Origin: Oikopleura dioica
Lineage: Eukaryota; Animalia; Chordata
Length of the DNA: 64,000 nucleotides
Assembly: GCA_907165135.1 (NCBI GenBank)
Contig: OU015567.1
Coordinates: 6,386,001 to 6,450,000 of the forward strand
Direction: 5' to 3'
This document shows positions 21,365-28,737 of the stretch, in pieces. Each line of letters starts with the position of its first letter. Position 1 is the stretch's first letter. The notes beneath the pieces were generated by a model. That model saw only the letters and a list, made by a program, of their open reading frames with translations. It had not been told where the DNA came from and did not search any database. Made by a program: the position numbers and the translations under genes.

Positions 21365-22438
<1,074 letters not shown>

Positions 22439-22811
22439 ACTCTTCAGAAAAAAATAAACAAAAAAGATAGATAAAAAATGCTTTACACTTGTTGTCTCCC
22501 GTGATCATTTTCTCGATGTTCGAAACGTCCAAACGTCGCCTAGAATCTTCTTTTCAATTCTCTAATCCTTTGAACCAACTTCACAGTATTTCATCTGACA
22601 GTAACAGTATTTCCCCTGTATTCATCCTATCACCCTTTTTATTCTACATGTAAGAATGGATCTCCGATTCTTCTTGGATAATTGCAATAATAAAATCAAA
22701 ACCGCTTCTGTTCAAAATTATTATCAACACACAAAAATCAACTATTGTTTTTTCGCAGATTATTCAGATGTCCAGGCTTTTCTCAAAAAATATCACAATC
22801 CCCTCCAGTCT

Positions 22812-22911
22812 GGGCTTAGCAACCTGTGTAGAAACCTGAGCCAGGGTACTGAAAACGTAAATTGAGTTCTGCAGAACCCTGACTCAGGTTTCTACACAGG
22901 TTACCGAGCCC
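22812..22911. mobile_element. 100-bp hairpin MITE with 36-bp inverted arms
   Basis: GGGCTTAGCAACCTGTGTAGAAACCTGAGCCAGGGT is inverted as ACCCTGACTCAGGTTTCTACACAGGTTACCGAGCCC. A single related arm lies at 17337-17373 in a GID4 intron. No TSD recognised. Confidence 0.65.
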
Positions 22912-23499
22912 ACCTTCAAGTTGCATTTTCTACGAGACCTCGAAAAGCTTCGCTTTTGTCAATTTGAAGCCAGTTTTGCCCGGGCATGTTCTCGTTTCGC
23001 CGATACGAGTTGTGCCTCTTTTTGAAGATCTGACTTTGGACGAGGTTTCGGATCTATTTCAAGTCGCTCAGAAAGTCGAGAAAGTTGTCAAAAGTGCTTT
23101 TCACGGGCAAGGGGATTAATTTTTCACGATTTTCTTGAGTTTTCGGCTCAAAAAACGATGGGCATGACGTGGCCATTAGTCAGCAAAACGTAAACACGTC
23201 GCTCTGTCCCCGGATGATCCCCCAAAAGAGACTCGTCGACGATTTCGGTTCAGAACGGGCCCGAAGCGGGCCAAACCGTCCCCCATGTTCATGTCCACAT
23301 AATTCCACGGCGCAAGAACGATTTTGAAAACAACGACGATATTTACTCAGAGCTCGAGAAGCATGATAAAGATGATAGAGCAGGGCGCACGGCAGAAGTC
23401 ATGGAAAAAGAAGCAGCAATGCTCAGAGCTCTTTTCAACTCTTGAAAGAACCTTCAGTTTCAACAGTTGGTTGGTGTATTTACAGTTGATGTGTTTTAG

Positions 23500-24300
23500 A
23501 TGCTGCTGTCGGCTCTTTTTATCGGAGCAGTTTCTGCAACCGACTTCGTAACATGCGGAAGTGTCATCAAACTCGTCAACAAAGCCTATACGATGAGACT
23601 TCATAGCCACGAGGTAAAAATCAACAGACTATCTTGATTCATGTACTTTTGCAGGTGACGTACGGTTCTGGCTCTGGGCAGCAATCAGTAACCGGTTTCC
23701 GCGGTGAGACAGATTCCAATTCGTATTGGTGGATCCGCGGAGCTTCTGAAGACAGCTGCAAACGAGGTGATTCAGTCATGTGCGGTAGTGAAGTGCTTCT
23801 TACACACATTAACACGATGAAAAATCTCCACTCTCATCATCACAGGTTTGCTCATTCATCCCTTTCTCATTAATCCAATCCCTTTTCATTATAGAGCGCC
23901 GCTTACGAACAATCAAGAAGTCAGTGCGTACGGCAACGACGGGGCAGGAGACGCGATGGACGTTTGGGAAGTAATTTGCGGAGGCAACAATCCCGTAAGT
24001 CCAGAACAACACCCGGGCCACCGGCCAAGCCTAATTAATTTCGCTTTCAAACGCCGTTTATATCCAATTAAACAGCCCCTAATCCTTGTTTATTCTCAGT
24101 GGCGACGAGACAGCGCGGTGAAACTGAAACACAAGGGAACGCAAAAGTACCTCGCTGCCAGCGGTCAACAATTCAACCGACCCATCAGCGGCCAAATGGA
24201 AATCGTGGCGCAGTCGAAATCTGGCGGAGCAACTGAGTGGAAAGTCGCCGAAGGTGTTTTCGTCTCTCCACCAACCCAAAGCGGACATGACGAGCTGTGA
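23500..24300 (+). CDS. SDF2L1: ER MIR-domain protein SDF2/SDF2L1
   Basis: Signal peptide, VTCGSVIKL..RLHSHEVTYGSGSGQQSVTG, three MIR repeats and a C-terminal HDEL. Confidence 0.88.
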
Positions 24301-24972: not shown

Positions 24973-27900
24973 ATGCGGCTGAGTCGGACCCTGGCCTCTC
25001 TTTACGGGGCTTTTCAGTTCGTCAATGGAGGTAAAAATGAATTCCGTGGATGTACTGATCATAAAATTTTCTTGCAGAGACGCAGTTTTGCCAAGATCCG
25101 TCGATCGAAACCTGCCGGGATTGCATTTTACGCGGGCCCGACTGCGCCTGGTGCGCTGATAACATAACTGCCGAGGATATGGGAACACACAGGATGAAAT
25201 GCGGCCGTCTGGACGACCTGAAGCAGCAGGGCTGCAAGCAAATCGAAGCAGACAAGAAGAGCTCGCGGAGCATCACTGATGCGGGCAAAAAGATCCGGCC
25301 GAAGAAATCGACCGTCGAACTGCGTCACGGAGAGTCGTACAACTTTCAAATCGAGTTTCATTCAGAAGAGTACTACCCGATCGACATGTACTACGTCATG
25401 GACCTGTCGCAGTCGATGCAGGACGATCTGGTAAAGCTGAAAGACCTGGCGTCGAAGCTCTGCGAAAAAATGACGGAAATCACGGGAAAAGACAACTTTA
25501 GGATCGGCCACGGCAGCTTTGTCGACAAACCAGTTATGCCCTTCATTTCGATCACCGAAGAAGACCTCAAAAATCCGTGTGGAAAGGAGCGGCCGTGTGA
25601 GCCCGCGTACAACTTTCATAACAATCTCAACTTGACGCTGGACACGGATAAGTTCTTTGACATTGTCGACAAAATGGATCACTCGAGTAACTTGGACCAA
25701 GCAGAAGCAGGACTCGACGGCATCCTGCAAGCAGCTGTATGCAAGGATCTCATTGGCTGGGGCGATGACAGGCACAAACTGATCGTATATTCCTCTGATG
25801 CACCCTTCCATGTCGCTGGGGATGGCAAGCTCGGCGGGATTCTAGAGCCACACGATATGCAATGCCACACTGATGGGTCAACCATGCCGAATGAAATTCC
25901 ACGGGACAAGGCAGTCCAGTACGATTACCCTTCAATCGGGCAAATTGTCGACGTAATAAGCAAGAACGAAATCATCATGATTTTCGCCGTGACAAAAAGT
26001 GTCAAAAAGACTTATTCACTTTTGGCGGATTTATTGCCGCTAGCAGCTGTGGGAGAATTAGAAGACGATTCGAACAATGTGATAAACATCATCGAAGAAA
26101 AATACAACCAACTAGCGCAGAAAGTCCGACTCCAGCACTCTGGAATTCCGGAAAACGTCCAGGTCGCTGCGAAAGTAATGTGCCATGCGGACAAACCTGA
26201 TGTTTGGACCGACGGATTCGAGTGCGAAAAAATCAACAGGAACCAAGCCGTTACTTTTGATGTTACGTTAACATGGAATAGCGATGGGGTCTGTCCAGAA
26301 ACTACGACGGCACTTGCTGACTTCCTGATTTATGGAATGGATGCCAAATCGGAGGTGGAAATCAAATTCATCTGCGACTGCGATTGTCCTGTTTACCCTG
26401 CGCCCAGCTTCATGGTCGATCCAAAGTTCACCCTGGGTAAGTCTGCTTTCCGTTTTGATTTTTTCCAATGAACAGTCATCCACTTTAAATTTTGGCTAGA
26501 CAAGAGGAGCGTCCCGTTCTCGTGCAACAGCGGAAACTATTCCTGCGGACAGTGCGTCTGCCCAGAAGGCCAGACTGGAAACATGTGCGAGTGCGATGTG
26601 GAAACTGATGCCGCAAATGTTTGGGAAGGCTGTATCAATCCAAAGGTAACGGAAAATATTGCGATGATTGGCTCATTTTTGTAGGACGTGGACGAAAAGC
26701 CATGCTCAGGCTTTGGCAGCTGCGTTTGCGGCAAATGCCAATGCCAAAAGTATCTCGGACGCGACATCACTGGAGAGTTCTGCGAGTGCGACTCTGACGA
26801 GTGCCACAAGTTCAACAACTTGCCCTGTGGCGGACCAGAGCATGGAACATGCCAATGTGATGGAACTTGCAAGTGTGCTGATGGCTGGAGTGGCGACAAT
26901 TGCTCGTGTAGTACGGACAAGCGAGTCTGTAAGAATCCAGAAGGTATCATTATGAAGGCTCGTTCTAAGTGCATGATCAAAATTTAGACTTGAGGCGATA
27001 CGGGGACAGCGCAGCAGAATGCTCTGGCAATGGAGACTGCAACTGCGGAAAGTGCGAGTGCAAGGAATTCCCCGGCATCGGCAAGTACACCGGTCGATAT
27101 TGCGAGAACTTCAACTCCAAATGCGAACAACATGAAGATTGCGCCAAGTGCCTCGCAAATGCATTTTTCGATGATGAAGACGGACCTGTTCTGAGTGAGT
27201 TTTTACGGCACGTTTCTAGCTCTAGAACAATTTATTAGACAAGAAATGTGCCGATGATTGCCGCTCCGTAAACCAGGAAACTGAAAAGCGAGAGGACTTC
27301 TACATCGAAGGCATCGTCGAGGTCGAAGGCGAAAAAGGCCGCTTTGAAATCGAAAATGTTGAGAAAATTTTCATCCCAAAAGACGAAAATGCAGATTCCC
27401 TGATGTGCGTTTCCAAGGACCGGGAGGGTTGCCAGTTCAACTTTGGTTATAAAATGTCAAATGAGAAGAAAGTTCAGTTGATGATTAGCGACACGCGAGG
27501 TAAGAAAAAAGCTTGAAATAACGATGTTATTCTTGCCGAAAATGGTGGTTATTTTTTGTGAAAACAAAGAATAACAGAACGACTACTAATCGGATTTGGT
27601 GTTTAACATTGTTATGTAACTAGCATGTCCCGAGCCGGTCAACGTTTGGATGGTTGTCGGTGGCATTCTTGGCGGTGTTGTCTTCCTTGGCTTGATCATT
27701 TTATTACTGATCAAGCTGATTATTTGTTGGATCTCCCGAATGGAAGTCAAAGAGTTTGAAAAAATGCGCTCGAAAGAGGCGCTCACTAGTGTAAGTTATT
27801 TTGACATTCTATCGGCCCGAAATCCTACTAAAGTTAGTATAAAAAGAGTGACTAAATGTTGCATGGTGTTAAACTTGGTGAAACCGGTGTTTGAAAATTA

Positions 27901-28254
27901 ATAAAAACTGATTTTTTATTCAATAAAATTGCTAGAGTGCCCGGTTCCGATGGATCCACTCGTCGCGATGGCCATTATCGCTGGTAGTATCCTTTTCCTA
28001 GGTCTTCTGATCTTAGTCCTTCTCAAAATTGCTCTCATCGTTTATGAGAGAATGGAGTACAAACAGTTTTTAAAAGACCAGAAGCTTTTGCAGTACCAGG
28101 TATCAAATAGAAAACGCCTCTTCCTCCCCAAATCAGTTTTTGCCGAGAATCGAGAGTAAATTATTTTTAGGGAAATAATCCAATCTACCAAAAGCCGGAA
28201 ACAACTCACAGAACCGACAATATCGTTTATCGAGGCGCTGCCCTAAGGTCGTAA
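24973..28254 (+). CDS. Integrin beta subunit with two alternative TM exons
   Basis: Signal peptide, PSI domain (TCRDCILRGPDCAWC), betaA MIDAS DLSQSMQDD, DAPFH and YDYPS motifs, Cys-rich I-EGF repeats, TM segment, and a tail with NPIY and NIVY. Confidence 0.95.
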
Positions 28255-28737
28255 AAACGATGGTGATCAAATCGAAAGTATCCCAATGACCCAAATGATG
28301 AATGAAAAAAATCCTTCATGATAAATTTAACAGATGCACTACTTCCTCCGTCCCGAAACTTCAAACAAACTGATAAGCTCTTCAAAAACCATGGACGTAC
28401 TACCTTCTTTTGTAAAATAATAAAAATAAAACTACTCATTGTTTCTTTTTTTGCCTATCTTTCTTTTTTCAAGTAATGCTTGCTGAATTCCAAAAAGCTC
28501 GTTTTGCATACTTTTATCTGACAAAAGCTTATTTGTATTTTCCTTAGATCATTCTTTTCCATAAAATCCAAACCTGTAACTTACACAGTCTAACCACCAA
28601 AATGATGATTTCAATTTTGCCTTTCTGCATGTTCAATCCACCACTGACCAAAACTCGTTTTCTCTTACAAATAAAATATATAAAAAATATCTTTAATAAT
28701 GAAATTTTGATTGTTCTAGTTTGTGCATGCTAGCAAG

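Follow-up and report, generated by a model that had tools for sequence, protein, structure and literature searches.

Tandem, alternative transmembrane exons in an integrin beta gene of Oikopleura dioica

Integrin activation is thought to hinge on a clasp between the alpha and beta subunits, formed by their transmembrane (TM) segments and at the inner face of the membrane, and the basis for this view is almost entirely mutagenesis of vertebrate alphaIIb-beta3. The locus described here raises the question of whether a single integrin beta gene can supply two natural versions of that module. It lies in a stretch of 64,000 nucleotides (nt) from Oikopleura dioica (contig OU015567.1, positions 6,386,001 to 6,450,000; the window), in which two adjacent exons, A and B, each encode a TM helix together with the membrane-proximal cytoplasmic segment. 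An earlier note on this DNA had described the pair as paralogous and as necessarily exclusive in use. We consider it quite likely that the pair arose by an ancient tandem duplication of the TM exon and that it serves two productive mRNAs, one running from the beta-tail exon (E6) through A to a shared final exon and the other from E6 through B to the same final exon, with exclusivity imposed through the reading frame.

The coding region of a complete integrin beta gene extends over 24973-28254 on the forward (+) strand. The gene model below draws on splice sites, on reading frames and on the cDNA-like relative L004, with which it agrees:

24973-25030, 25078-26436, 26500-26645, 26685-26943, 26988-27194 and 27239-27499, forward strand: constitutive exons of integrin beta, followed by A or B and then by 28171-28254.
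27239-27499, forward strand: beta-tail exon (E6), upstream partner common to A and B, with its donor after 27499 (GAG/gtaaga, phase 1).
27500-27623, forward strand: intron 1, 124 nt, from E6 to exon A.
27624-27790, forward strand: exon A, 167 nt (ctag/CA ... AGT/gtaagt), TM helix and membrane-proximal cytoplasmic segment of derived type.
27791-27935, forward strand: intron 2, 145 nt, from A to B.
27936-28099, forward strand: exon B, 164 nt (ctag/AG ... CAG/gtatca), TM helix and membrane-proximal segment of canonical type.
28100-28170, forward strand: intron 3, 71 nt, poorly conserved.
28171-28254, forward strand: shared final coding exon, encoding G-N-NPIY ... NIVY ... stop (NPIY at 28177-28188, NIVY at 28219-28230).

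Direct reading bore out the coordinates that the earlier note had given for the donor at 27499, for both alternative exons and for the final exon. The five constitutive introns are 39-63 nt long and those around A and B measure 124, 145 and 71 nt, while the 3' untranslated region (UTR) reaches to about 28430, with read depth extending to about 28424. The identity of the gene is secured by a Pfam Integrin_beta (VWA-type) match of 1.1e-89 (300.8 bits, cut-off 24.8), by PSI_integrin (30.7 bits, cut-off 27) and by two EGF_integrin matches (31.6 and 33.9 bits, cut-off 27). Integrin_B_tail matched at 20.5 bits, under its cut-off of 33.6, and Integrin_b_cyt gave weak matches only, on single exons, exon B included. 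Among named proteins, vertebrate beta1/2/7 come nearest, at 37-41% identity, and direct reading together with alignment to these proteins recovers the features of an integrin beta tail, namely the TM helix, Lys, R-M-E, F, NPIY and NIVY.

The two exons have the properties of a mutually exclusive pair: they are adjacent, homologous and of like length, both enter in phase 1 and leave in phase 0, and each has its own splice sites, which are AG/GT at all four positions and are conserved in all relatives. Across 46 residues their products share 41% identity (E = 7e-4 for the single comparison). The description in the earlier note of paralogous exons with these phases, canonical splice sites and a common NPxY exon is thus confirmed by direct reading, by this identity and by the gene model. 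A hidden Markov model built from the pair gave exactly two matches in the gene region, with no third copy. The open reading frame (ORF) is intact with exon A only (846 codons) and with exon B only (845 codons). Since the length of each exon is 2 modulo 3, passing from phase 1 to phase 0, inclusion of both or of neither shifts the frame; double inclusion, as the earlier note had anticipated, leads to a frameshift that meets a stop 21 codons into B; when both are skipped, the stop comes after 2 codons. The intron before G-x-NPxY has the same place and phase, by alignment, as the vertebrate 'WDT/GENPIY' boundary, and the ancestor of the pair would have been a single exon for the TM helix and membrane-proximal segment, equivalent to the vertebrate beta1 exon that ends in 'WDT'.

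Both exons are present in independent contigs from other samples, including Logan (L001, L009), JGI (L005) and ENA/TARA (L008, L011) sequences, and a further contig (L010) carries exon B and the final exon. Overall DNA identity between these relative lineages and the window is about 75%, with values of only 48-58% in the flanking introns and of about 88-89% in the exons. At the protein level, exon A is 98-100% identical in six relatives, exon B 94-96% and the final exon 100%, and the adjacent beta-tail exon reaches only about 70%. Comparison of the window with five or six relatives gave, for exon A, 14-17 synonymous and 0-2 nonsynonymous differences (synonymous rate, dS, 0.5-0.69; nonsynonymous rate, dN, 0-0.016) and, for exon B, 9.5-17 synonymous and 2-3 nonsynonymous differences (dS 0.43-0.78, dN 0.016-0.027); the final exon has 9-14 synonymous differences. 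Strong purifying selection therefore acts on both A and B, with dN/dS of about 0.01-0.06 across at least four diverged lineages.

We also searched a profile of the two exons against 1.84 billion representative proteins and found A-like exons, with the hallmark I-S-R-x-E-V-K-E-W/F-E-K-E ... T-A-I-T, and B-like exons, with the hallmark E/Q-R-x-E-Y-x-x-F-L/V-K ... W, in further plankton sequences. Three more distant taxa, represented by two TARA metagenome contigs (L012, L013) and one JGI contig (L014), have an A-like exon followed in tandem by a B-like one, with unchanged phases and AG/GT sites, and in L014 the ectodomain is 41% identical to that of the window. In a tree of the segments of about 55 residues, the A exons all cluster together (100/100 support), as do the B exons (96/92); since the alignment is short, only these two splits are trustworthy. 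The separation into two clades indicates that the duplication predates the divergence of these taxa and that both copies have been kept since; on the evidence of this tree, the tandem duplication of the TM exon is ancient.

A trap in reading database matches was also encountered in the distant taxa. In L013:906-941 and L014:3386-3418, the conserved K-E-W-E-K-E of exon A brings with it an ATG in a different frame, so that ORF callers report a spurious 99-residue 'protein' (P0139), which starts out of frame in exon A and runs through B and the final exon.

The two forms have in common the whole ectodomain and the NPIY and NIVY tail motifs. Residue contrasts between them were read from an alignment of both to beta1/2/7, with positions counted from the conserved, snorkelling Lys. 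A and B both keep a Gly eight residues before this Lys, and R-x-E and a Phe after it. At Lys +7, which we take to be the position of beta3 Asp723, the residue that pairs with the arginine of the alpha-subunit GFFKR motif, B has Glu in the window and Glu or Gln in other taxa, and A has Ser in every taxon. At five residues before NPxY, presumably the position of the talin-binding Trp of beta3 and beta1, B has Trp in other taxa, window B has a Tyr one position later, and A has Leu or Ile (Leu in the window). In the outer half of the helix, A has GGxxGG and B has A-x-x-A-G-S. Exon A thus lacks the two residues that in vertebrate integrins keep the receptor 'off' and engage talin. By this comparison, the A-form is predicted to be weakly clasped with an altered dependence on talin, and the B-form to be canonical. 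One gene probably makes two differently tuned receptors, as far as can be judged from these residues. Palmitoylation of a Cys in exon A was considered as a further distinction and dropped, the Cys not being conserved in other taxa.

Evidence on RNA came from three oligo-dT RNA-seq runs whose labels give the same species (X5, X6 and X7) and one plankton metatranscriptome (X1). The reads of X5-X7 derive from a diverged lineage, 88-95% like the window and matching L005, and for this reason only exons were mapped, and neither E6 nor the introns. Reads joining A to the final exon numbered 9 in X5, 17 in X6 and 38 in X7, or 64 in total. Those joining B to the final exon with GT..AG numbered 6, 5 and 7, with 4 more in X7 at a shifted cut from 28101 to 28168, and those joining A to B with GT..AG numbered 2, 4 and 0. 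Splicing of E6 to A is shown by loose read ends (12 and 33 reads, among the loose ends listed), and unspliced reads pass from A into intron 2 (4 and 10 reads). Among assembled sequences, an X1 contig that is 95-99% like the window joins 27790 to 28171, which is the A-to-final junction; L004 is a full-length, cDNA-like contig of the A-form; and L017, from a distant taxon, splices an A-like exon to the final exon with intron 1 retained. Three other sequences include B: L016, from a close lineage, runs from E5 through E6 to A, retains intron 2 and has B spliced to the final exon; L015, from another taxon, retains intron 1 and joins A to B to the final exon; and P0144 consists of the end of intron 2 followed by B spliced to the final exon.

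Exon A is the major productive form in bulk RNA, the donor of exon B is efficiently used, and both double inclusion and detention of intron 2 occur. The data suggest that the introns flanking A and B are spliced slowly or detained. Transcripts that join A to B are low-level, frameshifted and interrupted by stops in all lineages. The reading frame makes the two exons exclusive in productive mRNAs only; exclusivity is not enforced at the splicing step. The claim of the earlier note that use of the two exons must be exclusive stands in the former sense and falls in the latter, given the A-to-B reads, L015 and L016. A count of junction reads for each exon, which it had proposed, gave A-to-final and B-to-final junctions in all three runs and, among the loose ends listed, no junction from E6 to B. 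Two situations that it had named as contrary to its reading are excluded: use of A only as a terminal exon, without the NPxY exon, by the 64 A-to-final reads and the L004 contig, and decay of one exon by the dN/dS of 0.01-0.06 for both.

Is exon B, then, translated? For exon A, junctions to both constitutive flanks were seen; for exon B, only the junction to the final exon was seen, and the junction from E6 is deduced from constraint. The changes in B leave synonymous sites free and replacement sites nearly frozen, and they are periodic in one frame only. Only the phase-1 donor of E6 leads into this frame; by way of the A donor or intron 2, the frame differs or is closed, and in the frame imposed by A there are stop codons in every lineage. 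The codon-periodic constraint on B can accordingly only come from translation after splicing of E6 to B, and by this codon-level argument the E6-to-B junction would be used in mRNA.

Several observations weigh against two productive mRNAs differing in this module. The E6-to-B junction (27499 to 27936) was not seen among the loose ends listed for X5-X7, whose lineage is diverged and whose E6 is unmapped. In the assembled RNA contigs, what is visible upstream of B is always intron 2 (L016, P0144) or exon A (L015), and never E6. Moreover, the unspliced reads from A into intron 2 in X7 (10) about equal the depth on B (about 11), so that much of the bulk B signal could be due to molecules in which A, intron 2 and B are followed by the final exon. 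In addition, what Ser/Glu and Leu/Tyr would mean for the clasp and for talin is judged by homology with positions of vertebrate beta3 and beta1. The junction was likewise absent from the RNA-derived ORFs of the representative search, which contained A-to-final, A-to-B-to-final, or intron 2 followed by B-to-final, and when exon B or the beta-tail exon served as the query against protein databases, the matches were all ORFs reading through genomic DNA and none was an E6-to-B product. If B always followed A, the count of 6 A-to-B against 18-22 B-to-final reads would have a one-sided binomial probability of about 0.002-0.01 (hand calculation); this leaves intron-2-retained molecules, which could account for much of the B signal.

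These data bear on the possibility that only the A-form is productive and that B is a regulatory 'poison' exon, whose joining to the final exon behind A or behind a retained intron 2 would produce frameshifted or truncated transcripts and so lower integrin output or give a tail-less protein like beta1B. The A-to-B junction reads, the A-to-B-to-final contig L015, the retention of intron 2 alone in L016 with B spliced onward, and the lack of any E6-to-B junction in the reads and contigs examined would all be expected of it. A poison exon, however, would need no protein-level constraint, and the constraint on B speaks against this explanation: B evolves with a dN/dS of about 0.03-0.06 in precisely the frame that A-to-B and intron-2-retained transcripts never use, which places protein-level constraint in its productive frame. 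Moreover, B in the distant taxa keeps the Lys, (E/Q)-R-x-E-Y, the F and the Trp at -5 from NPxY, and the frameshifted peptides that reading on from A into B would yield show no conservation among taxa. We regard a purely regulatory B as improbable.

Far less probable still is that B (or A) is a decaying duplicate, a pseudo-exon occasionally picked by the spliceosome. B is minor in bulk RNA and shows slightly more amino-acid change than A, as a decaying copy might; against this, the frames are open, the AG/GT sites are conserved and purifying selection is strong in at least seven taxa or lineages whose neighbouring introns are about 50% identical, the A and B clades are each old, and the relatives are not near-identical strains (dS 0.4-0.8). 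An assembly or haplotype-collapse artefact as the source of the duplication in the window has a negligible probability: nothing was found in its favour, A, intron and B follow one another in the same order in Logan, ENA/TARA and JGI contigs that are independent and stem from different samples, RNA reads with A-to-B junctions span the intron, and the pair recurs in independent assemblies (L001, L005, L008, L009 and L011), which argues that it is no assembly artefact.

With two productive mRNAs as the preferred reading, the transcript running from E6 through A to the final exon, encoding 846 amino acids, would be the major form in bulk RNA, and that running through B, encoding 845, would be a minor or restricted form. 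Transcripts with both exons in or both out would meet premature stops and would presumably be cleared by nonsense-mediated mRNA decay.

Conserved elements of introns 1 and 2 may bear on how the choice between A and B is made:

27549-27559 and 27564-27574, forward strand: arms of an AU-rich hairpin in intron 1 (TTATTTTTTGT / GAAA loop / ACAAAGAATAA).
27610-27623, forward strand: 14-nt block abutting exon A, TGTTATGTAACTAG, with no or almost no variation in any close lineage.
27860-27871, forward strand: candidate Rbfox site (UGCAUG) with an adjoining GU-rich site, TGCATGGTGTTA, in intron 2, invariant in the window and six loci.

The block at 27860-27871, TGCATGGTGTTA, is the longest invariant intronic block in the seven sequences and lies 70 nt after the donor of A and 75 nt before the acceptor of B. 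In L012, L013 and L014 intron 2 is otherwise unalignable, and each has GCATG followed by a GU-rich run within 12 nt. The combination is found in the A-B intron of four independent taxa, with a shuffle-based joint chance of about 4e-5 for GCATG alone and of about 1e-8 for the composite of GCATG and the GU-rich run, which was defined post hoc. Such a conserved (U)GCAUG and GU-rich element in a flanking intron is the sequence arrangement of an Rbfox plus SUP-12/RBM24-type switch. TGCATG is not enriched in the window (23 found against 28 expected), so that the candidate site matters only through its conservation; a second TGCATG lies at 26970-26975, within the 44-nt constitutive intron 4. The choice between A and B is probably set by factors that bind the UGCAUG and GU-rich module in intron 2. 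Following the position rule for Rbfox, binding at 27860-27871 might tentatively be expected to favour A and to repress B.

The stem of the intron 1 hairpin is kept in six lineages, as TTATTTTGT/ACAAAATAA in the relatives, with loops of 5-8 nt that vary in length and sequence. Unlike the 14-nt block before exon A, the region around the acceptor of exon B shows no conservation. Other routes to exclusive splicing were rejected. Steric hindrance is at odds with an A-B intron of 145 nt and with the observed splicing of A to B. Looping-out, or docking and selector pairing, is disfavoured in that duplex energies between intron 1 and intron 2 were no better than those of shuffles in six lineages. RNAalifold on intron 2 returned weak hairpins only.

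Alternative forms of integrin beta are familiar from vertebrates, in which the cytoplasmic variants (beta1A/B/C/D, beta3B/C and beta5B) have a common TM and membrane-proximal segment and swap the distal tail. As in the Oikopleura gene, one beta gene thereby yields receptors with different intracellular behaviour. The arrangement of the beta1A/D kind is nevertheless the reverse of that described here, where the distal NPxY exon is common and the TM helix with the inner-membrane clasp is swapped. The contrast that the earlier note had drawn with these tail swaps holds, as exon 28171-28254 is common and it is the TM and membrane-proximal exon that varies. The beta1B variant results when the intron that follows the common exon is read through, and the RNA in which intron 2 is retained (L016) resembles it.

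Mutually exclusive exons are also known from other adhesion receptors. Exons 4A and 4B of Drosophila betaPS (myospheroid) are mutually exclusive and tandemly duplicated, and they encode part of the extracellular ligand-binding region; this is again an exclusive tandem pair in an integrin beta, but one that alters the ectodomain and not the membrane helix or clasp. In Drosophila Dscam1 (17.1/17.2) and N-cadherin (18a/18b), the TM segment is encoded by a tandem pair of mutually exclusive exons. The choice of a TM exon in an adhesion receptor is alike in these cases, whereas the protein family is different, and neither pair is known to alter an alpha/beta heterodimer clasp. Full-text literature searches turned up no publication that describes alternative TM exons in an integrin beta.

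For the regulatory module, the closest parallel is with the FGFR gene egl-15 of Caenorhabditis elegans, in which Fox-1/ASD-1 and SUP-12 repress exon 5B of the 5B/5A pair in muscle through juxtaposed UGCAUG and GUGUG elements (PMC2777236). Like the Oikopleura gene, egl-15 has a two-exon exclusive cluster in which the intron preceding one of the exons holds UGCAUG and, directly after it, a GU-rich stretch. The egl-15 module lies upstream of the first alternative exon, whereas that of Oikopleura lies between the two and has GUGUU as its GU part. The candidate module of Oikopleura, UGCAUGGUGUUA, is located 75 nt before exon B and is kept across taxa.

Two natural versions of the clasp module have been kept in one gene since before the split of taxa whose ectodomains are about 41% identical, and the ectodomain and NPxY tail are unchanged between the forms. 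Should the forms prove to be unlike in clasp strength or in talin dependence, a small laboratory chordate would offer an in vivo test of the role of the clasp. We hypothesize more broadly that splicing sets the activation set-point of the integrin by swapping the helix and clasp, with A 'unclasped' and B clasped, that a module for Rbfox and a GU-binder picks the form by tissue, and that detention of intron 2 adds a tail-less, beta1B-like product; taken as a whole, this scheme is speculative and rather doubtful. The locus is, moreover, a compact and conserved case, with three short introns and one invariant 12-nt element, of a two-exon exclusive choice and of the fate of frameshifted double inclusion.

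The surroundings of the gene are conserved as well. The window and the lineage of about 75% identity have in common a gene order of ARF-like GTPase, HIT-family protein, MIR/SDF2-like protein, integrin beta, eIF5B-like GTPase and leucyl aminopeptidase. The flanking genes occupy 21365-24297 and 28847 onward in the window, and Arf and GTP_EFTU were called on L008 and Peptidase_M17 on L009. In the RNA-derived contigs L014:2515-4002, L015:1-372, L016:555-1015 and L017:1-156, the constitutive introns are gone and at least one of the three introns around A and B is retained. Within the 3' UTR (28256-28430), apparent 'skips' of 79-94 nt and loose read ends are indels between lineages and not splicing.

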